The position numbers and the translations under genes were made by a program. Of a stretch of 64,000 nt of DNA, positions 10,884-45,773 are shown one piece after another (position 1 is the first letter of the stretch; every line of letters begins with the position of its first letter). This DNA comes from Paramoeba atlantica (lineage: Eukaryota; Protista; Discosea). The notes under the pieces were generated by a model. That model saw nothing but the letters and a program-made list of their open reading frames with translations. It ran no database searches and had not been told where the DNA came from. The stretch spans positions 26,797-90,796 of the forward strand of contig CDRNVI010000145.1 in the NCBI GenBank assembly GCA_977017575.1, read 5' to 3'.

Positions 10884-13800
10884 TCATTGTCGTTTTGCAG
10901 GTTTAATTGTACCATCAATGCGAGTGTATTCCTATCCAAAAATTGCAAAGAATTGCTTAGTTGTTGGGATTCAAAAATAATGAGAAAAAGAAAAAGAAAA
11001 ACCTTCAAAAACTGCTTCACTGGTTGAGAGTAGGTGGTGTCTGCTGGTGTTTGTCCCTAAATATTTACATATTTCCAAATATCAAACAGAGAACAGAGAT
11101 TCATCAAAAAAGTCAATCAATAAATCAAAGAGAAAATAACAAAGTATGTGTTGATTTCAGGATCAGCACCATATTCACACAAAAGTTTCACCATCTCCAT
11201 CAGATTCTTTTTTGCAGCCAGGTGGAGCGCGGTACCCCCCTCCTATTATTTTGGGTTGATGAATTGTTCCCAAAAAAGAAAGAAATGAGAAAAACCTCGT
11301 TTGCTTTGTTGATTTGAACACCATTTTTCAGCAAATATAAAATAATTTCATTGGTTATCTCAGGAGATTGTAAACAGAGGAGATCCATGAGAGGGGTGCG
11401 ACCCTTCAAAAAATGAAAGATTAAAATGACTCAGAAAAACCATTGAAAAAAATTAAATTAGAAAATACTTGATAGATTTCATTTACATCTGCTCCTTTTT
11501 CAACTAAGAGCTTAACAACTGGTAAAGTAACAGAATAGGAACCACAAACTTGATGAAGAACACTCTGTCCCTGTTTTTCCAAAACCAAATTGATGGTAAA
11601 TTGAAAGAAAGAAAAAAAAGAAAGAAGAGAGGGAAGTGATCAAAAAAAAACCAACAAACTTGAACAATGAGATGTGCTCCATTTTGTAATAATAATTCAA
11701 CAAGATCCAATAATTGGCTCTTACATGCAAGAGTCAGAGGTGATCGACCATTCTGTGGTGATGTGAGACTTTTGAAAAAGACAAAGAGAAAAGAAATTTC
11801 AAAGTTTTTGAAAAAAAAAAAGAAAAAAAGAGAATACAAATTGAGTGTGAACTCCATTGATTGGACAATTTTTAGAAATCAAAAATTGAGCCAAATCAAA
11901 TTTCCCTTTTTCACTTGCAAAACATAAAGGTCCAACATTCAATTCCTGGTGTGTGTGGAGATAAAAAAAGGTATGAAAAAAAGGGGAGGTGGGGTGGTGA
12001 ATTGTGAATAGTGTGTTGAAAACAGAAAAATTGTTCACAAATAATAAAAAATACCTCTTTCATATTCTCCAATAAATAAGAGATTACATCCATGTGGCCC
12101 TCTTCACATGCCAAGACAAGACCATCACTGTTCCCAACCTTAAGTCGAGCACCATGTTTGGTGAAGAAAGAAACAATTTTAAGATCTCCCAATTTACATG
12201 CAATGTGAAAGGGGGTCATGCTGATCTGTAATAATTTGAGAGAGGAAATTTTAAAATCAATTTTTTTCCTTTTCACAAATTAAAAAATCAAAAAGAGAGA
12301 AAACAAACTCGATTTTTAAAAAAGATTGAAGCACCTCTTTCCACCAATAAAGTAACAATGTCAAAATGACCTCCCTCAGTTGCCTCAAACAAAGCTGTCT
12401 TTTCCTTTTTGTTTCACAAAAGTTGATTTCAATAAATCGTCAAAGAAATCTCAAACAAGAGAGAAAAGAAAAAAAGAAAAAAACCTCTTTTCCTTGTTGA
12501 TCAATCTGAAGATCTTCTCTTTCCAAAAAACTTTTGACAATCTCAAAATTCCCTTTACGACAAGCAACATGCCATGGAGACATTTCATTCTAAAACAACA
12601 AAAGAGATCAATTCCTCTTTCTCCTCCTGCCTCCAACATAAAAAAAAAGAGAGACATTCAAAAAATAAAAACATACTTTTGAAATAAAATTTGGATTAGC
12701 ACCCTTTTCAAAAAGGAAATGAACCATTTTGATATCATCCCCCAAAACTGCAACATCTAAAGGGCTCCAACCCTATCAAAAAAAAGAGAGGAAGATATTG
12801 AAAAATGAGTTCTTTTCTCAAAAACTTTGAAAGTTGAGAAGGAGAAAAAAGGGGTATGGAAGAAAAAAGAACATTTGGTAAAGAAAAGTTGATATTTGCG
12901 CCTTTGTTGATCAAAAATTGTGCCATTTCGATATCCCCTCTTTCACAAACACGACACAAAGGAGTTTCAGTTCTCTGGCAAAAAAAAACGAGATTCGGAA
13001 AGATAAGTTTTTTTTCCAAACATTCATTCAAAATGAAAAGAATCAAAATTTTACATTTGTTGACCAATCCATCTTCGCTTTGTTGTCAATCAAAAGATTT
13101 GCCATTTCAAAGTCTCTCCTTTCACAACAAATCCACAAAGGGCTTTCACCTCCCTGTTCAAACAAAAGGGAACTTAAAAAAAATGGAAAGATCAAAAGAG
13201 ATCTATTTGATATGAGGAGAGAAAGAAAGAAAGAGAGAAAGAAAGAGAGAGACCCTCTTTGCTTGGTCGACCCGAGCTCCTTTTTCGATCAAAAATTTGG
13301 CAATTTCAAAATGTCCTTTTTCACAAACTGAAGATAATGCAGTCTTTTTTCCTGCCAAAATCTGTTGCCAAAAAAGAAGAGAAATTGAGTTGAACATTGA
13401 AAATGTGAGAAGAAAAAAAAAGAGAGATGACTTACTGAAATTGGATGAAGAGAAGAGCCTTTCTCAAAAAGAAACTGAACTATTTCAAGATTCCCAAATT
13501 CACAAGCAATAATCAATGGATCTGATCCATCCTTCAAAAACCACAACAATCAATCAATCAATCATCAAACTTTCTCTCTCCTCAAAAAAAAGACACAAAA
13601 AAAGAAAGAGAGAAAAACTTGAGCAAGACTATGAAGGGGAGCTCCATTTTCAATCAACAAAGTGATCATCTTTAAGTCTCCTTTTTCACAAGCTCTCATC
13701 AAAGGAGTAATCCCTTTCTTTTCTCAAAACTTTCAAATCAATATCACAACACACAGACACAGACATACACAGATCATCACCAGAGATGAAGATATGAACA

Positions 13801-13939
13801 AAAAAAGAAAGGAGAGAGAGACTGAACAAACCTGGTATCTTGGAGCTTGAGGGACAGCTACTTTTTGATTCAAAAGGAGTTGTTGAACCTTTCCATAATC
13901 CCCCTCTTCCACAGCTTCAAACAATTGGTGATCTGCCAT
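10884..13939 (-). CDS. Ankyrin-repeat protein copy 1 (17 exons, about 16 ANK repeats); last exon truncated
   Basis: ATG at 13939 (MADHQLFEAVEEGD..). GT-AG exons encode GITPLMRACEKGD, GKTALFEATEGGH, GRTPLM and GGTALHLAA. The last exon (from 10931) reads EYTRIDGTIKPAKRQ-TGA. Confidence 0.8.
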
Positions 13940-14233
13940 TCCCCCTCTCTCTTTCTATCTCACCAAAAAAACAAACTTCTCAACCAAAAGAAAGAAAAGA
14001 AAAAGGAAAATGGCAAGTGGACATCAATTTCATCTTCTAAATAAGGAAATATACAAATAAGAAAAATTCCAAATATGACCCTTTTTTTTCTCTTCATTTT
14101 TCATTTTCTCTTCTTGTTCTGAAATGGTCATCTTATTTTGGTTTCCATTTTATTGTCTCTCCCCTCCCTCTCCCTCTCCACCACCCCAAATAAAATAAAC
14201 AATTTCTTTTTTGAAAAAAGGAGATTTCCTTTT

Positions 14234-17200
14234 TCAAGCTAAATTCATTTGAGGTTTTTTGAATTCAATTTCATCACCAAAACCACATTCATCTCCAATC
14301 TTTCTCTTTTTACTTTCTCTTTCTTCTCCTTCTTCTCCTTCTTCTCCTTCTTCTCTTTGTTCTTCTCCTTCTTCTCTTTGTTCTTCTTTTCCATTTGATT
14401 CAATCTTTTCATTCCCTTCTCGTTTTGCAGGTTTAATTGAACCATCAATGTGAATGTATTCCTATCCAAAAATTGTGAAAAATTCTTTGCGAATTTCAAA
14501 AATAATGAGAAAAAGAAAAAGAAAAACCTTCAAAAACCTCTTCACTCGTGGATGGGGGGTGGAGTTTGCTGGTGTTAGTCCCTAAAAACAGTTAAAAATA
14601 TCAAAAAAAAGAGATTCATCAAAAAAAGTGAATCAATAAATCAAAGAAGAACATAGTTATTTTTGATTTCAGGATCAGCACCATATTCACACAAAAGTTT
14701 CACTATCTCCAACTGTCCCTTGTGCAGCTGCATGGAGCGCAGTACTCCCATCCTATCATTTTGGGTTGAATGAATTGTTCCCAAAGAGTACCCCAAAAAA
14801 CAAAGAAATGTGAAAAACCTCATTTGTTTTGTTGATTTGAACACCATTTTTCAACATAAATAAAACAACCTCTTTGATTGTCTGAAAAGTTTGACATCGG
14901 ATAAGAACCATGAGAGGAGTGGAACCCTTTCAAAAAAAAAATGATTAAAATGATACTCAAAAACACCCATTCAAAAAATCAAATTAGAGAATACTTGATT
15001 GACTCCATTTACATCTGCTCCATTTTCAACTAAGAACTTAACAACTGGTAAATTATCAAAACGGGAACCACAAACTTGATGAAGAACACTCTGTCCCTGT
15101 TTTCCCAAAACCAAATTGATGGTAAATTGAAAGAAAAAAAAGAAAGAAAGAAGAGAGAGGATTATTTTGAGGAAAGTGATCAAAAAAACCAACAAACTTG
15201 AACAATGAGATGTGCTCCATTTTGTAATAATAATTCTGCAATCTCCAAATTGTTTTGTACACATGCAAGAGTCAGAGGTGATTGATTTGCCTGTGATGAT
15301 GTGAGGTTTTGAAAAAGACAAAGAGAAAAGAAGTTTCAAAGTTTTTGAAAAAGAAAAAGAAAAAAAAGAGAATACAAATTGAGTGTGAACTCCATTGATT
15401 GGACAATTTTTAGAAATCAAAAATTGAGCCAAATCAAATTTCCCTTTTTCACTTGCAAAACATAAAGCTCCAACATTCAATTCCTGGTGTGTGTGTGGAG
15501 ATAAAAAAAGGTAAAAAAAGGGGGGAGTGGTGAATTGTGAATATTGTGTTGAAAACAGAAAAATTGTTCACAAATAATAAAAAAGCTACCTTTTTCATAT
15601 TCTCCAATAAATAAGAGATTACATCCATGTTACCACCTGGACAGGCCAACATAAGACCATCACTGAACCCAACCTTAAATTGAGCACCATGTTTTGTGAA
15701 GAAAGAAACAATTTTAAGGTTTCCAAAAAAACATGCAATGTGAAAGGGGGTATGTGAAGTCCTCTGTAACAATTTTAGAGAGAAATTTTAAAATCAATTC
15801 TGTTCATTTTTCCAAATAAAATTTTTAGAGAGAATTGTTCAAAAAATAAAAAAATCAAAAAGAGAAAACAGACTTGATTAACAAAATTGATTGAAGCACC
15901 TCTTTCCACCAATAAAGTAATAAGGTCAAAATGACCTCCCTCAGTTGCCTCATACAAAGCTGTCTTTCCCTTTTTGTTTCACAAAAGTTGATTTCAAAAT
16001 CATCAAAGAAATCTCAAACAAGAGAGAAAAGAAAAAAAGAAAAACCTGGTTTCCTAGTTGATCAATCTGAAGATCTTCTATCTTCAGAAAACTTTTGACA
16101 ATCTCTAAATTCCCTTTTTGACAAGCAACGTGAAATGGAGACATTTCATCCTAAAAATAAAATTCATAAATTCCTCTTTTCCCCCTCCCCCCTCCAACAT
16201 AAAAAAGAGAGACATTCAAAAAATAAAAACATACTTTTGAAATAAAATTTGGATTAGCACCCTTTTCAAGAAGGAAAAGAACCATTTTGATATCATTCTC
16301 CAAAACTGCAATACATAAAGGACTCCAACCCTACCAAGAAGAGATGAAAATATTTAAACTGAGTTCTTTTTTTCAAAAACTTTGAAAGTTGAGAAAGAGA
16401 AAAAATAACAATGGTTGTGGGAGACAAAACACCTTGTTGTAAGGAAAAGTTGATATTTGCACCTTTGTTGATCAATAATTGTGCCATTTCAAAATCCCCT
16501 CTTTTACAAGCACAACAAAAAGAAGTTTCTCCTTCCTGCCCCCCCCGCCCCCAAAAAAAAGAAGAAGATTGGTAAAGATTAGTTTTTTTTGTGAAAACAT
16601 CCAAAAAACTGAAGAAAAACTTTACATTTGTTGACCAATCCACTTTGGCTTTGTTGTCAATCAAAAGATTTGCCATTTTAATGTCTCCCCTTTCACAACA
16701 AATCCACAAAGGGCTTTTCCCTCCCTGTTCAAACAAATGGGAACTTTAAAGAATGGAAACATGAATAAACGAGGAGAAAGAAAGAGAGAAAGAGAGAAAG
16801 AAAGAGAGAGAGAAACCATCGTTGTTTGATCTACTGTGGCTCCTTTTTCAATCAAAAATTTGGCAATTTCAAAATATCCTTTTTCACAAACTGAAGATAA
16901 TGCAGTCTTCTTTGGTTTTTGCTACAATCAAATAAAAATAAAAGAAGAAGAATTGAGTTGAACACACATAACAATCAATATGAAAAAATGTGATGAGAAA
17001 AAAAAGATGATTTACCGAAATTGGCTGAAGAGAAGAGCCTTTCTCAAAAAGAAATTGAACAATTTCAAGATTCCCAAATTCACAAGCAATAATAAATGGA
17101 TCTGATCCACCCTTCAAACACAACAACAAAAGAGACAATCAATCATCAAAATTTTCTCCTCCCAACAAAAGGAAAAAGAAAGAGAAAAAAACCTCAGCAG

Positions 17201-17449
17201 CAAGACTCTTGAGGGAAGCACCATTTTCAATCAACAAAGTGATCATCTTTAAGTCTCCTTTTTCACAAGCTCTCATCAAAGGAGTAAACCCTTTCTTTTC
17301 TCAAAACTTTCAGATCAATATCACAACTCAACACACACAGAGACAACAGAATCATCACCAGAGAAATAATCAGGATAAAAAAAGAAAAGAAGATGAACCT
17401 TTTCAAAATCCCCTCCTTCCACAACTTCAAACAATTGGAGGTCTGCCAT
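14234..17449 (-). pseudogene. Ankyrin-repeat copy 2; exon 1 shortened and exon 15 frameshifted (truncated product or pseudogene)
   Basis: ATG at 17449 gives MADLQLFEVVEGGDFEK followed by GT. Exon 15 (~14710-14730) is 2 nt shorter than in its paralogues, giving DGSTALHAAAQGTVGDSETFV-stop. The ORF track shows the off-frame RMGVLRSM running into LEIVKLLCEYGAD. A sequencing error is not excluded. Confidence 0.6.
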
Positions 17450-17728: not shown

Positions 17729-20700
17729 TCAATTTTGTGGAGCTAATTCATCACCAAAACCACATTCATCTCCAATCTTTCTCTTTTTACTTTCTCTTTC
17801 TTCTCCTTCTCCTCTTTTCTCTTTTCCTCCTTCTCTTTGTTCTTCTTTTCCATTTGATTCAACCTTTTCATTCCCTTCTCGTTTTGCAGGTTTAATTGAA
17901 CCATCAATGTGAATGTATTTCTATTCGAAAATTGTGTTTCAATTCTTTGAGAATTTCAAAAAGAATGAGAAAAAGAAAAAGAAAAACCTTAAAAAACCTC
18001 TTCACTGATTGATAGTAGGTGGTGTCTGCTGGTGTTTGTCCCTAAAATATTTCAAACAAATCAAAAATAAGAGGTTCATCAAAAAAATAAATAAATAAAT
18101 CAAAGAAAAAAGAACCAAGTTATTTTTGATTTCAGGATCAGCACCATATTCACACAAAAGTTTCACTATCTCCAATTCACCCCTACTTGCAGCCACATGG
18201 AGCGCAGTACTCCCATCCTACCATTTTGGATTGATGAATTGTTCCCAAAGAGTACCCCCAAAAACAAAGAAATGTGAAAAACCTCATTTGTTTTGTTGAT
18301 TTGAACACCATTTTTCAACAAAAATAAAATAATCTCATTTTGTCGACCAGGCCTAAGGAGAGTCATGGGAGTGGAACCCTTTCAAAAAAAATGATTAAAA
18401 TGATACTCAAAAACACCCATTGAAAAAACTCAAATTAGAAAATACTTGATTGATTTCATTTACATCTGCTCCATTTTCAACTAAGAGCTTAACAGCTGGT
18501 AAAGTAACAGAATAGGAATCACAAACTTGATGAAGAATACTCTTTCCCTGTTTTCCCCAAAACCAAATTGATGGTAAATTGAAAGAAAAAAAGAAAGAAA
18601 AAAGAGAGAGGATTGTTTTGAGGAAAGTGAGCAAAAACCAACAAACTTGAACAATGAGATGTGCTCCATTTTGTAATAATAATTCTGCAATATCTAAATT
18701 GTTGTTTATACATGCAAGAGCCAGAGGTGAATAACCCTCCTGTGGTGATGAAAATTTTTAATAAGACAAAGAGAAAAGAAATTTCAAAGTTTTTGAAAAA
18801 AGAAAAAGAAAAAAAGAGAATACAAATAGCTTGTGAACTCCGTTGATTGGACAATTTTTAGAAATCAAAAATTGAGCCAAATCAAATTTCCCTTTTTCAC
18901 TTGCAAAACATAAAGGTCCAACATTCAATTCCTGGTGTGTGTGGAGATAAAAAAGGTAAAAAAAAGGGGGAGTGGTTGTGAATTGTGAATATTGTGTTGA
19001 AAACAGAAAAATTGTTCACAAAGAATAAAAAAATACCTCTTTCATATTCTCCAATAAATAAGAGATTACATTCATGTGACCCCCTTCACATGCACGGACA
19101 AGACCATCACTGTACCCAACTTGAAGTTGAGCACCATGTTTGGTGAAGAAAGAAACAATTTTAAGATCTCCTAATTTACATGCAATGGAAAAAGGGGTTC
19201 TGTGGAGCTGTAACAATTTTTAAAGAGAAATGTTCAAACAATAAAAAATCAAAAAGAGAGAAAACAGACTTGATTGAGAAAATTGATTGAAGCACCTCTT
19301 TCCACCAATAAAGTAATAATGTCAAAATGACCTCCCTCAGTTGCCTCACACAAAGCTGTCTTTCCCTTTTTGTTTCACAAAAGTTGATTTCAATAAATTA
19401 TCAAAGAAATCTCAAACAAGAGAAGAGAAAAAAAAAAAACCAGATTTCCTGGCTGATCAATCTGAAGATCTTCTATTTTCAGAAAAGGTTTGACAATCTC
19501 TAAATTCCCTTTTTGACAGGCAATGTGAAAGGGAGACATTCGATCCTAAAATGACAAAAGGACAAAATAGAATTCATCAATTCCTCTTTCTCCCCCTCCC
19601 CCCTCCAACATAAATATAAAGAAGAGACATTCAAAAAATAAAAAACATACTATTGAAAGAACATTTGGCTTAGCACCCTTTTCAAGAAGGAAAAGAACCA
19701 TTTTGATATCATTCTCCAAAACTGCAACACATAAAGGACTCCAACCCTACCAAAAAGAGAGAATTAAAGGAAATCTCTTTTGTTTCAGAAATCAATTGTG
19801 AAAACTTTGAAAGTTGAGAAAGAGAAAAAATAACAATGGGTGTGGGAGAATAAACCCCTCGTTGTAAAGAAAAGTTGATATTTGCACCTTTGTTGATCAA
19901 AAATTGTGCCATTTCAAAATCCCCTCTTTTACAAGCACAACAAAAAGAAGTTTCTCCTTCCTGTTCCCCCGCCCCCCCAAAAAAATAAGAAGATTGGTAA
20001 AGATTAGTTTTTTGAAAACGTTCAAAAAAAACATTCAAAAAAACTTTACATTTGTTGACCAATCCACTTTTGCTTTGTTGTCAATCAAAAGATTTGCCAT
20101 TTCAAAGTCTCTCCTTTCACAACAAATCCACAAAGGGCTTTTCCCTCCCTGTTCAAACAAATGGGAACTTTAAAGAATGAAAACATGAACCAATGAGGAG
20201 AGAAGGAGAGAAAGAGAGAAAGAGAGAAAGAGAGAAAGAAAGAGAGAAACTGTTGTTGTTTGGTCTACTTTGGCTCCTTTTTCAATCAAAAATTTGGCAA
20301 TTTCAAAATATCCTTTTTCACAAACTGAAGATAATGCAGTCTTCTTTGGCTTTTGCTACACCGAATAAAAATAAAAGAAGAAGAATTGAGTTGAACACAA
20401 CAAGCAATGAAAAATGGGATGAGAAAAAAAGAGAAAAATGATTTACTGATGATTGAAGAAGAGAAGAGCCTTTCTCAAAAAGAAACTGAGCTATTTCAAG
20501 ATTCCCAAATTCACAAGCACTAATCAATGGATCTGATCCATCCTTCAAAACCATCACAACAGAGACAATCAATCATCAAACTTTCACTCATCACCAAAAA
20601 AAAGGAGAAAAAGAAAGAGAAAAAAACCTCAGCAGGAGGGCTCTCAAGGGAAGCACCATTTTCAATCAACAAAGTGATCATCTTTAAGTCTCCTTTTTCA

Positions 20701-20947
20701 CAAGCTCTCATCAAAGGAGTAAACCCTTTCTTTTCTCAAAACTTTCAGATCAATATCACAACTCAACACACACACAGAGACAACAGAATCATCACCAGAG
20801 AGGATAATGATAAAAAGAAGAAGAAAAGAAGATGATCACCTGGCGTCTTGGAGCTTGATTGACATCGACTCTCCGACTCAAAAGAAGTCGTTTGACTTTT
20901 TCACAATCTCCCCCTTCCACAGCTTCAAACAATTGGCGGTCTGTCAT
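17729..20947 (-). CDS. Ankyrin-repeat protein copy 3
   Basis: ATG at 20947 (MTDRQLFEAVEGGDCEK..). Full exon series is present. Last exon 17920-17729 reads KYIHIDGSIKPAKRE..ESKKRKIGDECGFGDELAPQN-stop. Not every exon was frame-checked. Confidence 0.8.
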
Positions 20948-21279: not shown

Positions 21280-24200
21280 TTAATCCATTCGAGCTTTTTT
21301 GAATTCAATTTCATCACCACCAAAACCACATTCATCTCTAATCTTTCTCTTTTTACTTTCTCCTTCTTCTCCTTCTTCTCCTTCTCTTTGTTCTTCTTTT
21401 CCATTTGATTCAATCTTTTCATTCCCATCTCGTTTTGCAGGTTTAATTGAACCATCAATGTGAATGAATTCCTATTCAAAAAATTGTGTTTCAATTCTTT
21501 GAGAATTTCAAAAAGAATGAGAAAAAGAAAAAGAAAAACCTTAAAAAACTTCTTCACTGGTTGAGAAGAGGTGATGTCTGCTGGTGTTTGTCCCTAAAAT
21601 ATTTTGAAAATATCAAAAAAAAGAGATTCATCAAAAAAAATAAATCAATAAATCAAAGAAAAATGAACCTGCTTATTTTTGATTTCAGGATCAGCACCAT
21701 ATTCACACAAAAGTTTCACCATCTCCAACTTACCCCCATGTGCAGCCACATGGAGCGCAGTACTTCCATCCTACCATTTTGGGTTGAATGAATTGTTCCC
21801 AAAGAGTACCCCAAAAACAAAGAAATGAGAAAAACCTCATTTGTTTTGTTGATTTCAACACCATTTTTCAACATAAATAAAATACGCTCATTGGCTGATC
21901 GAAAATGTTGAAATTGGATAATAGTCATGAGAGGGGTGCGACCCTTCAAAAAAAAAAGGTTTAAAATGAGACTCAAAAACACCCATTCAAAAAAAATCAA
22001 ATTAGAAAATACTTGATAGATTTCATTTACATCTGCTCCATTTTCAACTAAGAGCTTAACAATTGGTAAAGTAACAGAAGAGGAACCACAAACTTGATGA
22101 AGAATACTCTTTCCCTGTTTTTCCAAAACCAAATTGATGGTAAATTGAAAGAAAGAAAAAAAAGAAAGAAAAAAGAGAGAGGATTGTTTTGAGGAAAGTT
22201 ATTCAAAAAACCAACAAACTTGAACAATGAAATGTGCTCCATTTTGTAATAATAATTCTGCAATATCCAAATTGTTGTGCAGACATGCAAGAGTCAGAGG
22301 TGATCGATTTGACTATGGTGATGTGAGACTTTGAATAAGACAAAGAGAAAAGAAATTACAAAGTTTTTGAAAAAAAAAAAAAAAAAGAGAATACAAATAA
22401 GCGACTGTGAACTCCATTGATTGGACAATTTTTAGAAATCAAAAATTGAGCCAAATCAAATTTCCCATTGAGACTTGCAAAACATAAAGGTCCAACATTC
22501 AATTCCTGGTGTGTGGAGATAAAAAAGGTAAAAAAAAGGGGGTAGTGAGTTGTGAATTGTGAATATTGTGTTGAAAACAGAAAAATTGTTCACAAATAAT
22601 AATAAAATACCTCTTTCATATTCTCCAATAAATAAGAGATTACATCCATGTGACCCTCTTCACATGCCAACACAAGACCATCACTGGACCTAACTTGAAG
22701 TTGAGCACCATGTTTGGTGAAGAAAGAAACAATTTTAAGATTTCCTAATTTGCATGCAATGGAAAAAGGGGTTCTGTGGAGCTGTCACAATTTTTAGAGA
22801 GAAATGTTCAAACAATAAAAAATCAAAAAGAGAGAAAACAGACTTGATTGAGAAAATTGATTGAAGCACCTCTTTCCACCAATAAAGTTATAATGTCAAA
22901 ATGACCTCCCTCAGTTGCCTCACACAAAGCTGTCTTTCTCTTTTTTTTTCACAAAAGTTGATTTCAATAAATCATCAAAGAAATCTCAAACAAGAGAAAA
23001 GAAAAAAAGAAAAAACCTGGTTTCCTTGTTGATCAATCTGAAGATCTTCTATTTTCAAAAAAGTTTTGACAATCTCTAAATTCCCTTTTTGACAAGCAAC
23101 ATGCCATGGAGACATTTGATCCTAAAATAACAAAAGGACAAAATAGAATCCATAAATTCCTCTTTCTCCCCCTCCCCCCTCCAACATAAATATAAAAAGA
23201 GAGACTTTTGAAAGAACATTTGGCTTAGCACCCTTTTCAAGAAGGAAATGAACCATTTTGATATCATTCTCCAAAACTGCAACACATAAAGGACTCCAAC
23301 CCTACCAAAAAAAGGTGAATTAAAGGAAATCTCTTTTGTTTCAGACATCAATTGTGAAAACTTTGAAAAATGAGAAAGAGAAAAAAAGGGGGTGTGGAAG
23401 AAAAAAATAACATTTCGTGAAGAAAAGTTGATATTTGCACCTTTGTTGATCAAAAATTGTGCCATTTCAAAATCCCCTCTTTTACAAGCACAACAAAAAG
23501 AAGTTTCTCCTTCCTGTTCCCCACCAAAAAATAAAAGATTAGTTTTTTTTGATGAAAACATTCAAAAAAACATTCAAAAAAACTTTACTTTTGTTGACCA
23601 ATCCACTTTTGCTTTGTTGTCAATCAAAAGATTTGCCATTTCAAAGTCTCTCCTTTCACAACAAATCCACAAAGGGCTTTTCCCTCCCTGTTCAAAAGTG
23701 ATAATTTTAAAAAAAACAAAAAGAAAGAGGAATCTAAAAATTGATTTGATATGAAGAGAGAAAGAGAAAGAAAGAAAGAAAGAAAGAGAAACTGTCTTTG
23801 TTTGGTCTACTGTGGCTCCTTTTTCAATCAAAAATTTGGCAATTTCAAAATATCCTTTTTCACAAACTGAAGATAATGCAGTCTTCTTTGGCTTTTGCTA
23901 CCCCAAATAAAAAAAGAAGAAGAATTGAGTTGAACACACACCCATAACAATCAATGAAAAAATGGGATCAGAAAAAAAAAAGAGAGATGATTTACTGATG
24001 ATTGAAGAAGAGAAGAGCCTTTCTCAAAAAGAAACTGAGCTATTTCAAGATTCCCAAATTCACAAGCACTAATCAATGGATCTGATCCATCCTTCAAAAC
24101 CATCACAACAGAGACAATCAATCATCAAACTTTCACTCATCACCAAAAAAAGGAGAAAAAGAAAGAGAAAAAAACCTCAGCAGGAGGGCTCTCAAGTGAA

Positions 24201-24496
24201 GCACCATTTTCAATCAACAAAGTGATCATCTTTAAGTCTCCTTTTTCACAAGCTCTCATCAAAGGAGTAAACCCTTTCTTTTCTCAAAACTTTCAGATCA
24301 ATATCGCAACTCAACACACACACAGAGAGACACAGAATCATCACCAGAGAGGATAATGATAAAAAGAAGAAGAAAAGAAGATGATCACCTGGCGTCTTGG
24401 AGCTTGATTGACATCCACTCTCCGACCCAAAAGAAGTCGTTTGACTTTTTCACAATCTCCCCCTTCCACAGCTTCAAACAATTGGCGGTCTGTCAT
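21280..24496 (-). CDS. Ankyrin-repeat protein copy 4
   Basis: ATG at 24496. Last exon 21471-21280 (64 codons) ends ..KKARMD-TAA. Not every exon was frame-checked. Confidence 0.8.
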
Positions 24497-27800: not shown

Positions 27801-28973
27801 ACTTTGAAAAATGAGAAAGAGAAAAAAAAGGGGTGTGGAAGAAAAAAATAACATCATGGAAAGAAAAGTTGATATTTGCGCCTTTGTTGATCAATAATTG
27901 TGCCATTTCAAAATCCCCTCTTTTACAAGCACAACAAAAAGAAGTTTCTCCTTCCTGTTCCCCCCAAAAATAAAAGATTAGTTTTTTTTATGAAAACCTC
28001 CAAAAAAACATTCAAAAAAACTTTACTTTTGTTGACCAATCCACTTTTGCTTTGTTATCAATCAAAAGATTTGCCATTTTAATGTCTCCCCTTTCACAAC
28101 AAAGCCACAAAGGGCTTTTCCCTCCCTGTTCAAACAAAATGATCATTTTCAAAAAACAAATAATAACTTCCAAAAAAAATGGAAAGAGGAATCTAAAAAT
28201 TGATTTGATATGAGGGAGAGAAAGAGAGAGGAAGAAAGAAAGAGAGAAAGAAAGAGAGAGAAACTGTTGTTGTTTGATCTACTGTGGCTCCTTTTTCAAT
28301 CAAAAATTTGGCAATTTCAAAATATCCTTTTTCACAAACTGAAGATAATGCAGTCTTCTTTGGCTTTTGCTACAATCAAATAAAAATAAAAGAAGAAGAA
28401 TTGAGTTGAACACACACCCACAACAATCAATAAGAAAAAATATGATTAGAAAAAAAAGAGAGATGATTTACTGAAAGCGGATGAAGAGAAGAGCCTTTCT
28501 CAAAAAGAAACTGAACTATTTCAAGATTCCCAAATTCACAAGCAATAATCAATGGATCTGATCCACCCTTCAAAAAACAAAACAAAAGAGACAATCAACC
28601 ATCAAAATTTTTAAAATTTATTTTTTTTTTGAGAAAAAGAAAGAGAAAAAAACCTGAGCAACTCTCTCAAGGGAAGCACCATTTTCAATCAACAAAGTGA
28701 TCATCTTTAAGTCTCCTTTTTGGCATGCTCTCATCAAAGGAGTAATCCCTTTCTTTTCTCAAAACTTTCAAATCAATATCACAACTCAACACACACACAG
28801 AGAGACACAGAATCATCACCAGAGAGGATAATGATGATAAAAAAAGAAGAAAAGAAGATGATCACCTGGTGTCTTGGAGCTTGATTGACATCAACTCTCC
28901 GACTCAAAAGAAGTTGTTTGACCTTTTCACAATCTCCCCCTCCCACAGCTTCAAACAATTGGTGATTTGCCAT
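24829..28973 (-). CDS. Ankyrin-repeat protein copy 5, with exons 8+9 triplicated (21 exons)
   Basis: ATG at 28973 (MANHQLFEAVGGGD..). Three exon-8 copies of 105 nt and three exon-9 copies of 96 nt lie between 26462 and 27543. Last exon is 25059-24829. Confidence 0.8.
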
Positions 28974-32400: not shown

Positions 32401-32775
32401 TTCTTTCCCAAAAAAAAAATCAAAAAGAGAGAAAAGAGAAAAAAGAAAGAGAGAAAAACCTCAGCATGACTCTTGAGCGAAGCACCATTTTCAATCAACA
32501 AAGTAATCATCTTTAAGTCTCCTTTTTCACATGCTCTCATCAAAGGAGTAATCCCTTTCTTTTCTCAAAACTTTCAGATCAATATCACAACTCAACACAC
32601 ACACAGAGACACAGAATCATCACCAGAGAGGATGATGAGATGAAAAAGAAGAAAAGAAGATGATCACCTGGCGTCTTGGAGCTTGATTGACATCCACTTT
32701 TTGATTCAAAAGGAGTTGTTGAACCTTTTCACAATCTCCCCCTTCCACAGCTTCAAACAATTGGAGGTCTGCCAT
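29474..32775 (-). CDS. Ankyrin-repeat protein copy 6
   Basis: ATG at 32775 (MADLQLFEAVEGGD..). Last exon 29710-29474 has TCG in place of the usual TAA and ends ..KKPRMDSPPQN-TGA. Confidence 0.8.
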
Positions 32776-33143: not shown

Positions 33144-36100
33144 TTAATCCATTCGAGGTTTTTTGAATTCAATTTCATCACCAAAACCACATTCATCTCG
33201 AACCTTTCTCTTTTTACTCTCTCTTTCTTCTCCTTCTTCTCCTTCTCTTTGTTCTTCTTTTCCATTTGATTCAATCTTTTCATTCCCATCTCGTTTTGCA
33301 GGTTTAATTGAACCATCAATGTGAATGTATTCCTATTCAAAAATTGTGTTTCAATTCTTTGCGAAATTTCAAAAATAATGAGGAAAAGAAAAAGAAAAAG
33401 AAAAACCTTCAAAAACTTCTTCATTTGTTGAGAGTAGGCGAAGTGTGCTGGTGTTTGTCCCTAAAATATTTTGAAAATAGTAAAAAAAGAGATTCATCAA
33501 AAAAATAAATCAATCAAATCAAAGAAAAATGAACCTGCTTATTTTTGATTTCAGGATCAGCACCATGTTCACACAAAAGTTTCACCATCTCCAATTCACC
33601 CCTACTTGCAGCCAGATGGAGCGCAGTATTCCCACCCTATCATTTTGGGTTGAATGAATTGTTCCCAAAGAGTACCCCAAAAAACAAAGAAATGAGAAAA
33701 ACCTCATTTGTTTTGTTGATTTCAACACCATTTTTCAACAAAAATAAAACAATCTCTCTGATTGTCTGAAATTGTTGAAATTGGAGAAGAGTCATGAGAA
33801 GAGTGCGACCCTTTGAAAAAAAAAATGATTAAAATGATACTCAAAAACACCCATTCAAAAAAAAATCAAATTAGAAAAAATACTTGATAGATTTCATTTA
33901 CATCTGCTCCATTTTCAACTAAAATCTTAACAACTGGTAAAGTAACAGAATAGGAACAAACTTGATGAAGAATACTCTTTCCCTGTTTTTCCAAACCAAA
34001 TTGATGGTAAATTGAAAGAAAGAAAAGAAAAAAAAAAAAGAAAGAAAAAAGAGAGAGGACTTGAACAATGATATGTGCTCCATTTTGTAATAATAATTTT
34101 GCAATATCCACATTGTTGGAGGTACATGCAAGAGCCAGAGGTGATTGACCCTCCTGTGGTGACATGAGAATTTTGAAAAAGACAAAGAGAAAAGAAATTT
34201 CAAATTTTTTGGAAGAAAAAGAAAAAAAAAAAAGAAAAAAAGAGAATACAAATAAGTTAGTGTGAACTCCATTGATTGGACAATTTTTAGAAATCAAAAA
34301 TTGAGCCAAATCAAATTTCCCATTTTGACTTGCAAAACATAAAGGTCCAACATTCAATTCCTGGTGTGTGTGTGTGTGGAGATCAAAAAAGGTATGAAAA
34401 AAAGGGGAGGTGGGGTGGTGAATTGTAAATATTGTGTTGAAAACAGAAAAATTGTATCCTAATAAGAAAAAATACCTCTTTCGTATTCTCCAATAAATAA
34501 GAGATTACATCCATGTTACCCCCTTCACATGCACGGACAAGACCATCACTGTTCCCAACTTGAAGTTGAGCACCATGTTTGGTGAAGAAAGAAACAATTT
34601 TAAGATTTCCTAATTTACATGCAATGTGAAAGGGGTTATGAATCCTCTGTAATAATTTTGAGAGAGAAAAATTTTAAAATCAGAGTTTTTTTCATTTTGA
34701 CAATTAAAAAAAATCAAAAAGAGAAAACAGACTTGATTTTCAAAATTGATTGAAGCACCTCTTTCCACCAATAAAGTTATAATGTCAAAATGACCTCCCT
34801 CAGTTGCCTCACACAAAGCTGTCTTTCCCTTTTTGTTTCACAAAAGTTAATTTCAAAGAAATCATCAAAGAAATCTCAAACAAGAGAAAAGAAAAAAAGA
34901 AAACCAGATTTCCTTGTTGATCAATCTGAAGATCTTCTATTTTCAAAAAAATTTTGACAATCTCTAAATTCCCTTTTTGACAAGCAATGTGAAAGGGAGA
35001 CATTCGATCCTAAAATGACAAAAGGACAAAATAGAATTCATAAATTCCTCTTTCTCCCCTCCCCCCTCCAACATAAATATCAAGAGAGACATTCAAAAAA
35101 TAAAAACATACTTTTGAAAGAATATTTGGATTAGCACCCTTTTCAAGAAGGAAATGAACCATTTTGATATCATTCTCCAAAACTGCAAAACATAAAGGGC
35201 TCCAACTCTACCAAAAAGAGATGAAAATATTTAAACTGAGTTCTTTTTTTCAAACATTTTGAAAGTTGAGAAAAAGAAAAAATAACAATGGGTGTGGGAG
35301 AATAAACATCTCGTTGCAGAGAAAAGTTGATATTTGCACCTTTGTTGATCAAAAATTGTGCCATTTCAAAATCCCCTCTTTTACAAGCACAACACAAAGA
35401 AGTTTCTCCTTCCTGTCCCCCCAGCCCCAAAAAAAAGAAGAAGATTGGTAAAGATTAGTTTTTTTTTTGTGAAAACATTCAAACGAAAAGAATCAAAATT
35501 TTACATTTGTTGACCAATCCACCTTTGCTTTGTTGTCAATCAAAAGGTTTGCCATTTCAAAGTCTCTCCTTTCACAACAAATCCACAAAGGGCTTTTCCC
35601 TCTCTGTTCAAACAAAATGATCATTTTAAAAAAAATGGAAACAGGAACCAATGAGGAGAGAAAAGAGAGAAAGAAAGAAAGAAAGAGAAACCATCGTTGT
35701 TTGATCTACTTTGGCTCCTTTTTCAATCAAAAATTTGACAATTTCAAAATACCCTTTTTCACAAACTGAAGATAATGCAGTCTTCTTTCCTCCCCACTGG
35801 TAAAAAACACAACAATAATCAATGAAAAAATATGGGCAGAACTAAAAAAGAGAAAAATGATTGACTGATGACTGAGGAAGAGAATAGCCTTTCTCAAAAA
35901 GAAATTGAACAATTTCAAGATTCCCAAACTCACAAGCGCAAATCAGTGGATCTGATCCATCCTTCAAAAACCATAACAACAGAGACAATCAATCATCAAA
36001 CTTTTTTCCTCCCAAAAAAAGAGAATCTTTTTTGGAGAAAAAGAAAGAGAAAAAAACCTCAGCAGCAAGACTCTTGAGCGAAGCTCCATTTTCAATCAAC

Positions 36101-36372
36101 AAAGTGATCATCTTTAAGTCTCCTTTTTCACATGCTCTCATCAAAGGAGTAATCCCTTTCTTTCTCAAAACTTTCAGATCAATATCACAACTCAACACAC
36201 ACACAGAGACACATCATCACCAGAGATAATGATGATAAAAAAAAGAAGAAAAGAAGATGATCACCTGGTGTCTTGGAGCTTGATTGACATCCACTCTCCG
36301 ACTCAAAAGAAGTTGTTTAACTTTTTCATAATCTCCCCCTTCCACAGCTTCAAACAATTGGTGATCTGTCAT
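33144..36372 (-). CDS. Ankyrin-repeat protein copy 7
   Basis: ATG at 36372 (MTDHQLFEAVEGGDYEK..). Last exon is 33332-33144 (63 codons). Confidence 0.8.
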
Positions 36373-36678: not shown

Positions 36679-39236
36679 TTAATCCATTCGAGGTTTTTTG
36701 AATTCAATTTCATCATCACCAAAACCACATTCATCTCCAATCTTTCTCTTTTTACTTTCTCTTTCTTCTCCTTCTTCTCTTTGTTCTTCTCCTTCTCCTT
36801 CCCCTTCTTCTCCTTCTTCTCTTTGTTCTTCTTCTTTTCCATTTGATTCAATCTTTTCATTCCCTTCTCGTTTTGCAGGTTTAATTGAACCATCAATGTG
36901 AATGAATTCCTATTCAAAAAATTGTGTTTCAATTCTTTGAGAATTTCAAAAAGAATAAGGAAAAGATTTAAAAAACCTTCAAAAACTTCCTCACTGAGTG
37001 ATAGTAGGTGGTGTCTGCTGGTGTTTGTCCCTAAAATATTTTGAAAATATCAAAAAAAAGAGATTCATCAAAAAAAATAAATCAATAAATCAAAGAAAAA
37101 TGAACCTGCTTATTTTTGATTTCAGGATCAGCACCATGTTCACACAAAAGTTTCACCATCTCCAACTTCCCCCCATGTGCAGCCAGATGGAGCGCAGTAC
37201 TTCCATCCTATCATTTTGGGTTGAATGAATTGTTCCCAAAGAGGACCCCAAAAAACAAAGAAATGAGAAAAACCTCCTTTGTTTTGTTGATTTCAGCACC
37301 ATTTTTTAACATAAATAAAACACGCTCATTGGCTGACCGAAAATGTTGATGTTGGATAAGAGCCATGAGAGGAGTGCGACCCTTCAAAAAAAAAAGATTT
37401 AAAATGATACTCAAAAACATCCATTCAAAAAAAATCAAATTAGAAAATACTTGATAGATTTCATTTACATCTGCTCCATTTTCAACTAAGATCTTAACAA
37501 TTGGTAAAGTAACAGAATAGGAACCACAAACTTCATGAAGAATACTCTTTCCCTGTTTTTCCAAAACCAAATTGATGGTAAATTGAAAGAAAGAAAAGAA
37601 AGAAAAGAGAGGGTTGTTTTGAGGAAAGTTATTCAAAAAACCAACAAACTTGAACAATGAGATGTGCTCCATTTTGTAATAATAATTCTGCAATATCTAA
37701 ATTGTTGTTTATACATGCAAGAGCCAGAGGTGATCGACTTGACTGTGGTGATGAGACTTTGAATAAGACAAAGAGAAAAAAAGTTTCAAAGTTTTTGAAA
37801 AAAGAAAAAGAAAAAAAGAGAATACAAATAAGTTAGTGTGAACTCCATTGATTGGACAATTTTTAGAAATCAAAAATTGAGCCAAATCAAAGTTCCCTTT
37901 TTCACTTGCAAAACATAAAGGTCCAACATTCAATTCCTGGTGTGTGTGTGGAGATAAAAAAAACGAAAAAAGGGGGGAGTTGTGAATATTGTGTTGAAAA
38001 CAGAAAAAATTGTTCACAAATAATAAAAAATACCTCTTTCATATTCTCCAATAAATAAGAGATTACATCCATGTGGCCCTCTTTACATGCCAAGACAAGA
38101 CCATCACTGAACCCAACTTGAAGTTGAGCACCATGTTTGGTGAAGAAAGAAACAATTTTAAGATCTCCTAATTTACATGCAATGTGAAAGGGGTTCTAAT
38201 AATTTGAGAGAAATTTTAAAATCAATTTTTTTGATTTTTACAATTAAAAAAAAAATCAAAAAGAGAAAACAGACTCGATTTCCAAAATTGATTGAAGCAC
38301 CTCTTTCCACCAATAAAGTTATAATGTCAAAATGACCTCCCTCAGTTGCCTCAAACAAAGCTGTCTTTTCCTTTTTGTTTCACAAAAGTTGATTTCAATA
38401 AATCATCAAAGAAATCTCAAATAAGAGAAAAGAAAAAAAGCAACCCATTTTCCTGGTTGATCAATCTGAAGATCTTCTATTTTCAAAAAAGTTTTGACAA
38501 TCTCTAAATTCCCTTTTTGACAAGCAACATGAAATGGAGACATTTCATCCTAAAATGACAAAAGGACAAAATAGAATTCATCAATTTCCCTTTCTTCCCT
38601 CCCCCCTCCAGCATAAATAAAAAGACAAGACATTCAAAAATAAAAAACATACTTTTGAAATAAAATTTGGATGAGCACCCTTTTCAAGAAGGAAATGAAC
38701 CATTTTGATATCATTCTCCAAAACTGCAAAACATAAAGGACTCCAACTCTACCAAAAAAAGGTGAATGAAAGGAAATCTCTTTTGTTTCAGAAATCAATT
38801 GTGAAAACTTTGAAAAATGAGAAAGAGAAAAAAAAGGGGGTGTGGAAGAAAAAAAAATAACATTTCGTGAAGAAAAGTTGATATTTGCGCCTTTGTTGAT
38901 CAAAAATTGTGCCATTTCAAAATCCCCTCTTTTACAAGCACAACAAAAAGAAGTTCCTCCTTTCTGTTCCCCCGCCCCCCAAAAAAAGGAGATAGGGAAA
39001 GATTAGTTTTTTTTTTGTGAAAGCATTCAAAAAACTGAAGAAAAAGTTTACATTTGTTGACAAATCCACCTTTGCTTTGTTGTCAATCAAAAGATTTGCC
39101 ATTTTAATGTCTCCCCTTTCACAACAAATCCACAAAGGGCTTTTCCCTCCCTGTTCAAACAAAATGATCATTTTCAAAAAACAAATAATAACTTCCAAAA
39201 AAATGGAAACATGAATCGAAAAATTGATTTGATACG

Positions 39237-39268
<32 letters not shown>

Positions 39269-40063
39269 CTGTCTTTGTTTGATCTACTGTGGCTCCTTTT
39301 TCAATCAAAAATTTGGCAATTTCAAAGTGTCCTTTTTCACAAACTGAAGATAATGCAGTCTTATTTGGTGTTCGCTACAATCAAACAAAAATAAAAGAAG
39401 AAGAATTGAGTTGAACACACACCCAACAACAATCAATATGAAAAAATATGATTAGAGAAAAAAAAAGAGAGATGAGTTAACTGAAATTGGATGAAGAGAA
39501 GAGCCTTTCTCAAAAAGAAACTGAACTATTTCAAGATCCCCAAATTCACAAGCGAGAATAAATGGATCTGATCCATCCTAAAAACCATAACAACAGAGAC
39601 AATCAATCATCAAACTTTTTTCCTCCCAAGACAAACAACCAACTTTTTAAAAAAAAAGAAAGAGAAAAAAACTCGAGCAAGACTCTTGAGGGAAGCTCCA
39701 TTTTCAATCAACAAAGTAATCATCTTTAAGTCTCCTTTTTCACAAGCTCTCATCAAAGGAGTAAACCCTTTCTTTTCTCAAAACTTTCAAATCAATATCA
39801 CAACTCAACACAAACACACAGAGACACAGAATCATCACCAGAGATGATAATGATGACGATCATACACACAAAGATGATGATGATCAATCACAAAAAAGAT
39901 CAACACAAACCAAAAAAAGACAAAAGGAGAGAGAGAGAGACTGAACAACCTGGTGTCTTGGAGATTGATTGACATCCACTTTTTGATTCAAAAGGAGTTG
40001 TTTGACCTTTTCACAATCCCCCTCTTTCACAGCTTCAAACAATTGGCAGTCTGTTAATGACAT
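36679..40063 (-). CDS. Ankyrin-repeat protein copy 8
   Basis: ATG at 40063 (MSLTDCQLFEAVKEGD..). Last exon is 36909-36679 (77 codons). Confidence 0.8.
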
Positions 40064-40352: not shown

Positions 40353-43300
40353 TTAATCCATTCGAGGTTTTTTGAATTCAATTTCATCATCACCAAAACC
40401 ACATTCATCTCCAATCTTTCTCTTTTTACTTTCTCTTTCTTCTCCTTCTTCTCCTTCTCTTTGTTCTTCTCCTTCTCTTTGTTCTTCTTTTCCATTTGAT
40501 TCAACCTTTTCATTCCCTTCTCGTTTTGCAGGTTTAATTGAACCATCAATGTGAATGTATTCCTATTCAAAAATTGTGTTTCAATTCTTTGCGAATTTTA
40601 AAAATAATGAGGAAAAGAAAAAGAAAAAGAAAAACCTTCAAAATCTTCTTCACTTGTTGAGAGTAGGCGGAGTCTGCTGGTGTTTGTCCCTAAAATATTT
40701 TAAAATATCCAAAAAAAAAAGAGGTTCATCAAAAAAATAAATCAATAAAATCAAAGAAAAATGAACCTGATTATTTTTGATTTCAGGATCAGCACCATGT
40801 TCACACAAAAGTTTCACCATCTCCAACATAATCCTCCTTGCAGCAGCCAGATGGAGCGCAGTACTTCCATCCTACCATTTTGGGTTGAATGAATTGTTCC
40901 CAAAGAGTACTCCAAAAATAAAAGAAATGTGAAAAACCTCATTTGTTTTGTTGATTTCAACACCATTTTTCAACAAAAATAAAACAATCTCTTTGATTGT
41001 CTGAAATTGTTGATATTGGATAAGAACCATGAGAGGAGTGCGACCCTTTGAAAAAAATGATTAAAATGAGACACTCAAAAACACCCATTCAAAAAAAATC
41101 AAATTAGAAAATACTTGATAGATTTCATTTACATCTGCTCCATTTTCAACCAAGAGCTTAACAACTGGTAAATTAACAGAATGGGAAGCACAAACTTGAT
41201 AAAGAACAGAACTCCGTCCCTGTTTTTCCAAAACCAAATTGATGGGAAATTGAAAGAAAAAAAAGAAAGAAAGAAAAGAGAGGATTGTTTTGAGGAAAGT
41301 TATTCAAAAAAAACCAATAAACTTGAACAATGAGATGTGCTCCATTTTGTAATAATAATTTTGCAATATCCAAATTGTTGTTGAGACACGCAAGAACCAG
41401 AGGTGATTGGCCCTGCTGTGGTGATGTGAGACTTTTGAAAAAGACAAAGAGAAAAGAAATTTCAAAGTTTTTGAAAAAGAAAAAGAAAAAAAGAAAATAC
41501 AAATAGATTGTGAACTCCGTTGATTGGACAATTTTTAGAAATCAAAAATTGAGCCAAATCAAATTTCCCTTTTTCACTTGCAAAACATAAAGGTCCAACA
41601 TTCAATTCCTGGTGTGTGTGTGGAGATAAAAAAGGTATGAAAAAAAGGGGAGGTGGGGTGGTGAATTGTGAATATTGTGTTGAAAACAGAAAAATTGTTC
41701 ACAAAGAATAAAAATCTACCTTTTTCATCTTCTCCAATAAATAAGAGATTAAATCCATGTTACCACCTTGACATGCCAACACAAGACCATCACTGTTCCC
41801 AACTTGAAGTTGAGCACCATGTTTGGTGAAGAAAGAAACAATTTTAAGATCTCCTAATTTACATGCAATGTGAAAGGGGTTATGAATCCTCTGTAATAAT
41901 TTTGAGAGAGAAAAATTTCAAAATCAAAGTTTTTTCATTTTGAATAAAAAAATCAAAAAGAGAAAACAGACTTGATTTTCAAAATTGATTGAAGCACCTC
42001 TTTCCACCAATAAAGTAATAATGTCAAAATGACCTCCCTCAGTTGCCTCACACAAAGCTGTAATTCCCTTTTCACAAAAGTTGATTTCAATAAATCATCA
42101 AAGAAATCTCAAACAAAAGAAAAGAAAAAAAGAAAAAACCTGGTTTCCTTGTTGATCAATCTGAAGATCTTCTATTTTCAAAAAAATTTTGACAATCTCT
42201 AAATTCCCTTTTTGACAAGCAACATGCCATGGAGACATTTTATCCTAAAATGAGAAAAGAAAGGACAAAATAAAATTCATCAATTCTTCTTTCTCACCTC
42301 ACTCCCCTCCTCCAATAGAAATAAAAAGACAAGACATTCAAAAAATAAAAACATACTTTTGAACGGATATTTGGATTAGCACCCTTTTCAAGAAGGAAAA
42401 GAACCATTTTGATATCATTCTCCAAAACTGCAACACATAAAGGACTCCAACTCTACCAAAAAGAGATGAAAATATTTAAATAGAGTTCTTTTTTTCAAAA
42501 ACTTTGAAAGTTGAGAAAAAGAAAAATAACAATGGGTGTGGGAGAATAAACACCTCGTTGTAAAGAAAAGTTGATATTTGCACCTTTGTTGATCAAAAAT
42601 TGTGCCATTTCAAAATCCCCTCTTTTACAAGCACGACACAAAGAAGTTTCTCCTTTCTGTCCCCCGCCCCCCCAAAAAAAAAGAAGATTGGTAAAGATTA
42701 GTTTTTTTTTTGTGAAAACATTCAAAAAAAACATTCAAAAAAACTTTACATTTGTTGACCAATCTACTTTTGCTTTGTTGTCAATCAAAAGATTTGCCAT
42801 TTCAAAGTCTCTCCTTTCACAACAAATCCACAAAGGACTTTCGCCTCCCTGTTCAAACAAAATGATAATTTTAAAAAAATGGAAACAGGAACCAATGAGG
42901 AGAGAAAGAGAGAAAGAGAAAGAGAGAAAGAGAGAGAAACTGTCTTTGTTTGATCTACTTTGGCTCCTTTTTCAATCAAAAATTTGGCAATTTCAAAATA
43001 TCCTCTTTCACAAACTAAAGATAATGCAGTCTTCTTTCCTCCCCACTGGTAAAAAATGAAAAAAAAATTCCACAAGTTAAATCAATGAAAAATTCTGGCA
43101 GAACAAAAAAAAAAGAGAGATGATTTACTGCTGACTGAAGAGAATAGCCTTTCTCAAAAAGAAATTGAACAATTTCAAGATTCCCAAATTCACAAGCACA
43201 AATCAGTGGATCTGATCCATCCTTCAAAAACCAAACAATCAATCAAAACTTTTTTTCCTCCCCACGACAAACAACCAACTTTTTCAAAAAAAAGAAAGAG

Positions 43301-43629
43301 AAAAAACCTCAGCAGCATGACTCCTGAGGGAAGCACCATTTTCAATCAACAAAGAAATCATCTTTAAGTCTCCTTTTTCACAAGCTCTCATCAAAGGAGT
43401 AATCCCTTTCTTTTCTCAAAACTTTCAGATCAATATCACAACTCAACACACAACAGATGATGATGGGAGCAACACAAAAAAAAAGACAAAAGGAGAGAGA
43501 GAGAGACTGAAAAACCTGGTGTCTTGGAGATTGATTGACAGCCACTTTTTGATTCAAAAGGAGTTGTTGAACCTTTTCACAATCCCCTCTTCCCACAGCC
43601 AGAAACAATTGGCGGTCTGATAATGACAT
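40353..43629 (-). CDS. Ankyrin-repeat protein copy 9
   Basis: ATG at 43629 (MSLSDRQLFLAVGRGD..). Last exon is 40562-40353 (70 codons). Confidence 0.8.
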
Positions 43630-45769: not shown

Positions 45770-45773
45770 CTTG

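Follow-up and report, generated by a model that had tools for sequence, protein, structure and literature searches.

In brown algae, candidate receptors of the ROCO-LRR and NB-ARC-TPR types devote one exon to each repeat, and the shuffling of these repeats has been tied to the succession of phase-0 exons (Zambounis et al. 2012, PMC3341825). Diversifying selection on the repeats was reported in the same study. A later report describes alternative splicing of the brown-algal exons that encode leucine-rich repeats (Teng et al. 2024, PMC11378527). These receptors are the closest described counterparts of the locus considered here, an array of nine ankyrin-repeat genes in the amoeba Paramoeba atlantica. 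The array occupies positions 10880-43629, on the minus strand, of a 64,000-nucleotide stretch of contig CDRNVI010000145.1 (assembly GCA_977017575.1, forward-strand positions 26,797 to 90,796). We refer to this whole stretch as the window and use its coordinates throughout.

Two other groups of natural repeat proteins offer points of comparison. The ANK, TPR and WD repeats of fungal NLR-like proteins diversify by recombination between units, and their variation falls on the binding face. The membrane-binding domain of the vertebrate ankyrins, ANK1-3, is a long ankyrin stack encoded largely as one repeat per exon of ~99 nt. Its 24 repeats have remained essentially unchanged over a period of no less than 500 million years (PMC4358367). 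In this study, we carried out a computational analysis of the Paramoeba array and of its relatives elsewhere in the genome. The nine genes likely belong to a fast-recombining germline family of ankyrin-only binding proteins, of which they form one of four nuclear tandem arrays.

Self-comparison of the window resolved nine head-to-tail units, in agreement with a preliminary description of this DNA that had counted nine paralogues. The units start at about 10887, 14417, 17876, 21430, 25015, 29671, 33291, 36865 and 40518. They measure 3.46-3.65 kb, with the exception of the fifth (4.66 kb), and across units the DNA identity to unit 1 is 80-88%. The nine units were aligned, the exons of copy 1 were projected onto the others, and each boundary was refined to the nearest in-frame AG or GT. 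The gene so modelled has 16 coding exons; copy 5 has 20, and copy 2 is damaged. The preliminary description had given 17 exons per gene, and the last of these, with 1-8 codons and a stop, is only possible. Exon 1 measures 108-114 nt, exons 2-15 measure 93-111 nt except for exon 10 (162-174 nt), and exon 16 measures 54 nt.

The Pfam Ank motif spans about 33 residues (G-x-TPLH-x-A...G...vv..LL..GA..n). An exon-by-exon Pfam search returned a match to Ank or Ank_3 (PF00023 and PF13606) on each of exons 2-15. Thirteen exons carry one repeat each and exon 10 carries two matched stretches, all in register, as the preliminary description had proposed. The match begins at profile position 1-3 in these exons, and at position 5 in the weakly matching exon 11. 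In 12 of the 14 exons the first residue falls on Pfam positions 1-3, and in exons 4 and 11 the repeat begins 3-4 residues after the exon does. In copy 1, ten of exons 2-15 reach the gathering score (21.1 bits, for Ank alone); exons 5, 11, 13 and 14 fall below it (13-20.5 bits) with their register unchanged. Exons 1 and 16 gave no Pfam match in this search and look like partial capping repeats.

No domain other than ankyrin was detected in the exon-by-exon Pfam search of the gene, in line with the earlier view of a stand-alone ankyrin family. The predicted product is an ankyrin-only protein of ~550 residues, with 15 full repeats and a partial cap at each terminus. It is the uninterrupted series of repeats that suggests their folding into one continuous solenoid. 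Like ANK1-3, and with an exon structure like that of ANK1, the protein has a long ankyrin stack with roughly one repeat per exon. Unlike this family, however, ANK1-3 are single-copy, extremely conserved genes that form no tandem arrays and carry spectrin-binding and death domains. The Paramoeba gene has no ZU5-UPA-death region, and only 18 codons, with up to 8 more, follow its last full repeat.

Each gene has 15 introns of 53-178 nt, and in all nine copies these are GT-AG introns in phase 0. The preliminary description had reported phase 0 at the junctions it checked and had named several introns in non-zero phase as the refuting case; none of that kind was seen. The 14 internal exons are multiples of 3 in length in the eight intact copies. 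In a test that is independent of the choice of splice sites, differences in exon length among these eight copies were multiples of 3 in 19 of 19 cases, as against 81 of 261 cases for introns, which is the level expected by chance. All the introns also interrupt the repeat at one point, in the tip of the beta-hairpin, where Pfam position 33 gives way to position 1. Because of this common position, the uniform phase is best regarded as one inherited feature of exon duplication rather than as 15 coincidences.

This layout resembles that of the receptor candidates of the brown algae Ectocarpus and Saccharina, in which each repeat has its own exon, the exons form symmetric phase-0 runs, and the genes are clustered. 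Birth and death of genes, variation in exon number between paralogues and a variable ligand-binding face are further features in common. The two systems differ in that the repeats here are ankyrin rather than LRR or TPR, and that no ROC-COR, NB-ARC or kinase module is attached: exons 1 and 16 have no Pfam match, and the spacers between copies, which are duplicated with each unit, consist of only ~0.5-0.7 kb of low-complexity DNA. They also differ in that the exons here are old and dissimilar, whereas those of the algae are recently shuffled, near-identical cassettes, and in that positive selection has not been demonstrated in the ankyrin family. The exon design is already known from the brown-algal LRR/TPR receptors. 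The array had been put forward as the best candidate for an undescribed system in the window. This claim is not sustained, as one repeat per phase-0 exon, with shuffling, is already in the literature (PMC3341825; PMC11378527). We found no published description of ankyrin arrays of this kind from amoebae or from Paramoeba.

Two lines of evidence bear on how the copies have been exchanging sequence. The nearest relative of each copy switches between successive exon-plus-intron segments, and in a PHI-like test of incompatibility between neighbouring sites 0 of 300 permutations gave a value as low as that observed. These results show the array to be a recombination mosaic. The repeats of any one gene are old. 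Exon pairs inside one gene share on average 28% of their amino acids (maximum 44%) and 53% of their nucleotides, compared with 90% nucleotide identity for the same exon in different copies. The 16-exon architecture therefore predates the expansion. At present, the copying unit is the whole gene and, occasionally, a block of two exons.

The same identities rule out a model in which repeats are copied and pasted as cassettes within a gene, except for the blocks of exons 8 and 9 and of exons 12 and 13 discussed below. They also bear on two analogies drawn in the preliminary description. A natural library of interchangeable cassettes, in the manner of designed ankyrin repeat proteins (DARPins), is unlike repeats that are old and share only 28% of their amino acids within a gene. 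Nor does the likeness to the shuffled repeats of fungal NLRs extend to the high repeat identity within a protein, which is lacking here. The fungal repeats are highly alike, lie in a single exon and are fused to NACHT or NB-ARC and effector domains, and none of these properties applies to the ankyrin family.

The family extends beyond the window. The genome was searched in six frames with the protein encoded by exon 11, and the matching regions on contigs C150, C173 and C230 were then modelled; for the 15 genes outside the window, exon boundaries were set automatically. The search gave 13 further close copies on these three contigs, and the family comprises at least 24 genes in four arrays: nine in the window (contig C145), seven on C150, five on C173 and three on C230. 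The highest identity of any gene pair is 93.2%, and gene order differs among the arrays. The four are therefore paralogous arrays, and we rejected the possibility that the other three are haplotigs, i.e., alternative haplotypes.

The array on C230 is subtelomeric: the contig starts with (CCCTAAA)n (C230:1-200), which are telomere repeats of the TTTAGGG type, and its three genes start ~15 kb away. Telomere repeats were not found at the ends of C145, C150 and C173. A subtelomeric position was considered for the window array too, and finds no support in the C145 ends, which lack such repeats. At the upstream end of the C230 array lies C230_g1 (C230:23872-24520), which consists of exons 12-16 only.

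Fragments of open reading frames (ORFs) from this family also occur among ENA-derived sequences (P0001-P0005), on contigs that measure 8.6-77.7 kb. Four such fragments came from a word-index protein search whose query was the stop-free ORF surrounding exon 10. One of them is 100% identical to a copy in the genome and another 98.9%, whereas the remaining two reach only 92% with their best match. None of the contigs that carry them has the length of a contig in the present assembly. The set of copies in a second public assembly is therefore partly different, a hint that isolates or haplotypes vary.

Exon order is constant in all 24 genes apart from changes in tandem blocks, and no exon is found at a new position. 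Whole exon blocks were gained or lost in seven of the 24 genes, and in six of these all the exons left are open and the frame is preserved. Three copies of the exon 8-exon 9 pair occur in copy 5, C173_g1, C173_g4 and C230_g2, and the last of these additionally has exons 12 and 13 doubled. C150_g2 is without exons 5-12, and has a 168-nt intron that starts like intron 4 and ends like intron 12; this hybrid junction is a direct trace of intron-to-intron recombination. C150_g7 is without exon 6, of which a dead remnant remains inside a 214-nt intron. C150_g1, which is without exons 3 and 4, is damaged, with two exons unresolved. Predicted protein lengths range from ~264 to 750 residues with no frameshift. 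The preliminary description had anticipated that symmetric exons could be duplicated, skipped or swapped without loss of frame. For duplication and loss this is true in the germline, in six of the seven variants.

The same symmetry could, in principle, be exploited at the RNA level, with exons skipped, repeated or joined across neighbouring copies so that nine genes yield many binders. Any skip of a symmetric phase-0 internal exon would be in frame, the genes stand head to tail with spacers of just 0.5-0.7 kb, and alternative splicing of one-repeat LRR exons is reported for brown algae (PMC11378527). Such combinatorics are nevertheless very unlikely here, given that the repeats of a gene differ from one another and are specific to their positions, that exon order is kept in 24 of 24 genes but for tandem blocks, and that every copy comes with a stop and a duplicated upstream region of its own. 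In addition, skipping single ankyrin repeats often destabilises the stack.

We further compared the evolution of the repeat framework with that of the face expected to bind ligands. Position classes were fixed beforehand from the Pfam register and the positions randomised in DARPins. The face comprised the residues that precede TPLH, positions 11-12 together with insertions next to them, and everything beyond position 29. The eight intact window copies have an overall ratio of nonsynonymous to synonymous divergence (dN/dS) of 0.74, with dS of 0.13 and intron divergence of 0.19. By the NG86 method, the framework of the window copies has a dN of 0.064, and the face has a dN of 0.200, which equals its own dS (0.19) and the intron divergence. 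With 18-23 genes per exon, the same method gave a framework dN/dS of 0.55 (confidence interval, CI, 0.43-0.73) and a face value of 1.18 relative to its own dS (CI 0.93-1.55). Relative to the pooled dS, the face value in this larger set is 1.67 (CI 1.29-2.12). Framework dN/dS ranged from 0.47 to 0.55 across the NG86 estimates. A codon model (IQ-TREE, GY+F3X4) fitted to 18 genes gave an omega of 0.46 for the framework and 1.18 for the face.

These values suggest that the scaffold is constrained and that the binding face is either unconstrained or weakly diversifying. Strong positive selection was looked for and not found; the CI of the face omega of 1.18 spans 1. The rate of change in the face is close to neutral, and diversifying selection is therefore not demonstrated. 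Variability peaks in the columns at the two ends of exons and at positions 11-15 of exons 12, 14 and 15. Single sites hold at most 8 different residues among 22-23 genes, and the mean is 2.9 residues per face site (~22 genes). As in DARPins, a constant framework is combined with a variable hairpin tip and start of helix 1, the most variable Pfam positions including 1, 3, 11, 12 and the tail. DARPins, however, are synthetic and have 2-3 internal repeats with identical frameworks, whereas the proteins here have 15 repeats, repeat-specific frameworks and modest diversity. As a separate observation on exons 2-15, framework codons show a synonymous divergence of 0.113, less than the 0.19 of the face and of the introns. 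Possible reasons are that gene conversion is tolerated chiefly where the sequence is conserved, that synonymous sites are under selection, or that the alignment has an influence.

Both more and less selection than we propose have to be considered in the light of these rates. The array might be selectively irrelevant and decaying, with redundant copies drifting to pseudogenes and the rate pattern reflecting how loops and helices tolerate mutation. Such a scheme would accommodate the overall dN/dS of 0.74 and a face omega of ~1, the damage to copy 2, C150_g1 and C173_g5, the truncation of C230_g1, and the transposons that flank the array. It is unlikely, however, in view of a framework omega clearly below 1 (CI 0.43-0.73), of exon insertions and deletions that are always multiples of 3, and of exon-block variants that hold the frame. 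In addition, 20 of the 24 genes have all exons open and splice sites intact despite 10-20% neutral divergence.

Conversely, the face could be under positive selection as an adaptive recognition repertoire directed at microbes, viruses, an endosymbiont or selfish elements. Germline shuffling of exon blocks and gene conversion would then yield new specificities. Measured against its own synonymous sites or introns, the face reaches an omega of only 1.05-1.2 with a CI that includes 1, and the genes have no attached signalling or effector domain. On these grounds we regard an adaptive repertoire as possible but doubtful. It would fit the concentration of variation at DARPin-randomised positions and hairpin tips, the presence of up to 8 residues per site, and the excess of face dN over the pooled dS (1.67-fold, CI 1.29-2.12). 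The intact state of the exon-number variants, the subtelomeric position of one array, and the copies in the second public assembly that are only 92% identical to their best match here also agree with it.

The explanation we prefer is the one given at the outset, a fast-recombining germline family of ankyrin-only binding proteins. From the observed anatomy, intron phases, exon-block variants, mosaicism and rate contrast, we infer, at the level of sequence, a binding function and a mechanism of recombination that would run as follows. Exon duplications would first have built the repeat stack, leaving a phase-0 intron at almost every repeat boundary. These founding duplications must be old, because the repeats within a gene are only 28% identical. 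In this intron-rich, AT-rich protist, the family would then have expanded by tandem duplication of whole 3.5-kb units, and unequal crossing-over and gene conversion would keep reshuffling it in the germline. As the internal exons are all symmetric, recombination in introns would add or remove whole repeats in frame. The helical framework is maintained by purifying selection. Change at about the neutral rate is seen in the face that usually binds ligands, made up of the hairpin tips and the exposed first part of helix 1. Given a constrained framework and a free face, the products are most likely cytosolic binding or adaptor proteins with diverged specificities.

Several points weigh against this explanation. 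At least three of the 24 genes are damaged (copy 2, C150_g1 and C173_g5), C230_g1 is truncated, and some copies may be silent. A face omega of ~1 together with a framework value of ~0.5 also fits drift under relaxed constraint. A cryptic extra domain might conceivably be present in exon 1 or exon 16. Finally, a few odd exon lengths outside the window (e.g., 126 or 87 nt) may be mis-calls.

The individual copies, all on the minus strand, are as follows. Copy 1 (11003..13939) is intact, with 16 coding exons and 549 codons from the ATG at 13939 to the end of exon 16 at 11003. Copies 4 (21540..24496), 6 (29785..32775) and 7 (33407..36372) are likewise intact with 16 exons, as is copy 3 (17988..20947), whose exon 14 is 12 nt shorter. 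Copies 8 (36977..40063) and 9 (40636..43629) are also intact with 16 exons, and their start codon lies two codons farther upstream (MSL...); exon 10 of copy 8 is cut to 162 nt. Copy 5 (25129..28973) is intact with 20 coding exons. Its exon 8-exon 9 pair occurs three times, in the order E8-E9-E8-E9-E8-E9 and in frame throughout. The four extra exons (27370-27275, 27150-27046, 26986-26891 and 26736-26632) are bounded by AG and GT, are 96 or 105 nt long and are in phase 0. Copy 2 (14528..17449) is damaged and is a probable pseudogene. The second half of its exon 1 and the start of intron 1 are deleted, and its exon 15 has a 2-nt deletion.

At the 3' end of the genes, a possible intron 16 of 42-50 nt, with GT-AG ends, directly follows exon 16 and leaves 1-8 codons and a stop. 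In copy 1 (10880..11002, minus strand), this putative intron is 47 nt long and is followed by 7 codons and a stop. In 17 of the 24 family genes, splicing at the first AG after exon 16 would add just one Asn codon before a TGA stop. Reading through past exon 16 instead gives a variable tail encoded by T-rich sequence, with a stop after two codons in five genes. An exon 17 reached via intron 16 is plausible. We considered a C-terminal membrane anchor, suggested by the read-through sequence VFLFLFLIIFE..., and dropped it as a conserved feature: five genes stop after VF, the frames vary, and the sequence resembles other T-rich introns. The ~80 nt after the stop (10880-10960 and its counterparts) are nearly identical in 24 of 24 genes despite differing frames. 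This conservation downstream of exon 16 is independent of frame, and the region is therefore probably 3' untranslated region (UTR); it suggests a conserved, non-coding 3'-UTR or processing element.

The spacer at 13940..14527, which includes copy 2's 3' end as well as the region upstream of copy 1, exemplifies the DNA between the genes. It contains purine-rich (GAA/GAG)n tracts, and such tracts lie upstream of each gene (e.g., 14290-14400). When a whole unit was used in a DNA search of the genome, only low-complexity spacer matches were returned, and the purine-rich motif matched dozens of times genome-wide.

The array is bordered on both sides by other elements. One end is marked by a piggyBac-like element (43785-45889), which lies 156 nt upstream of copy 9's start codon. 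On the other side, a single plus-strand ORF of 3462 codons (115-10503), made of 240-nt (80-residue) tandem repeats with NGGTG motifs, runs past the left edge of the window and has its other end 380 nt from the 3' end of copy 1. A paralogue of this ORF, 84-92% identical to it, adjoins the ankyrin array on C150 (C150:34988-40000). The giant gene and the ankyrin array therefore seem to have been co-duplicated, though their relative orientation differs.

Giant viruses and intracellular bacteria often carry ankyrin arrays, and the flanks raise the question of whether the array was acquired from a giant virus or travelled as cargo of a mobile element. A phage-fibre-like repeat gene on one side, a piggyBac-like element on the other and the duplication of the neighbouring GGTG-repeat gene along with the array on C150 might be read in this way. 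Such an origin is hardly credible, however, for genes that each have 15 short GT-AG introns of a uniformly T-rich style and a base composition like that of the surrounding host DNA. Moreover, the 3.5-kb unit contains no terminal repeats or transposase, and the family is found at four distinct loci, of which one is subtelomeric.

The family is a clean example of a long-inferred principle, namely that exons with symmetric phase-0 boundaries permit unequal recombination to alter the number of repeats without shifting the frame, and the hybrid intron of the gene without exons 5-12 displays this principle directly. As a working repertoire of binders, the family would also provide natural long ankyrin stacks of 8 to 22 exons, with in-frame variation in repeat number, of interest for protein engineering and for studies of how repeat proteins grow. 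We see a small chance that the four arrays amount to more, i.e., an inherited, fast-recombining library of ankyrin binders for cell-autonomous recognition of microbes, viruses or the endosymbiont of the amoeba, diversified both in the germline, through gene conversion and the gain and loss of exon blocks, and at the RNA level, through exon skipping or splicing between copies. Such a library would be the ankyrin counterpart of the brown-algal LRR/TPR system, without an attached signalling domain. If the family is truly a repertoire of binders, a free-living or symbiont-bearing amoeba would diversify a stand-alone ankyrin scaffold as brown algae do their LRR/TPR receptors.

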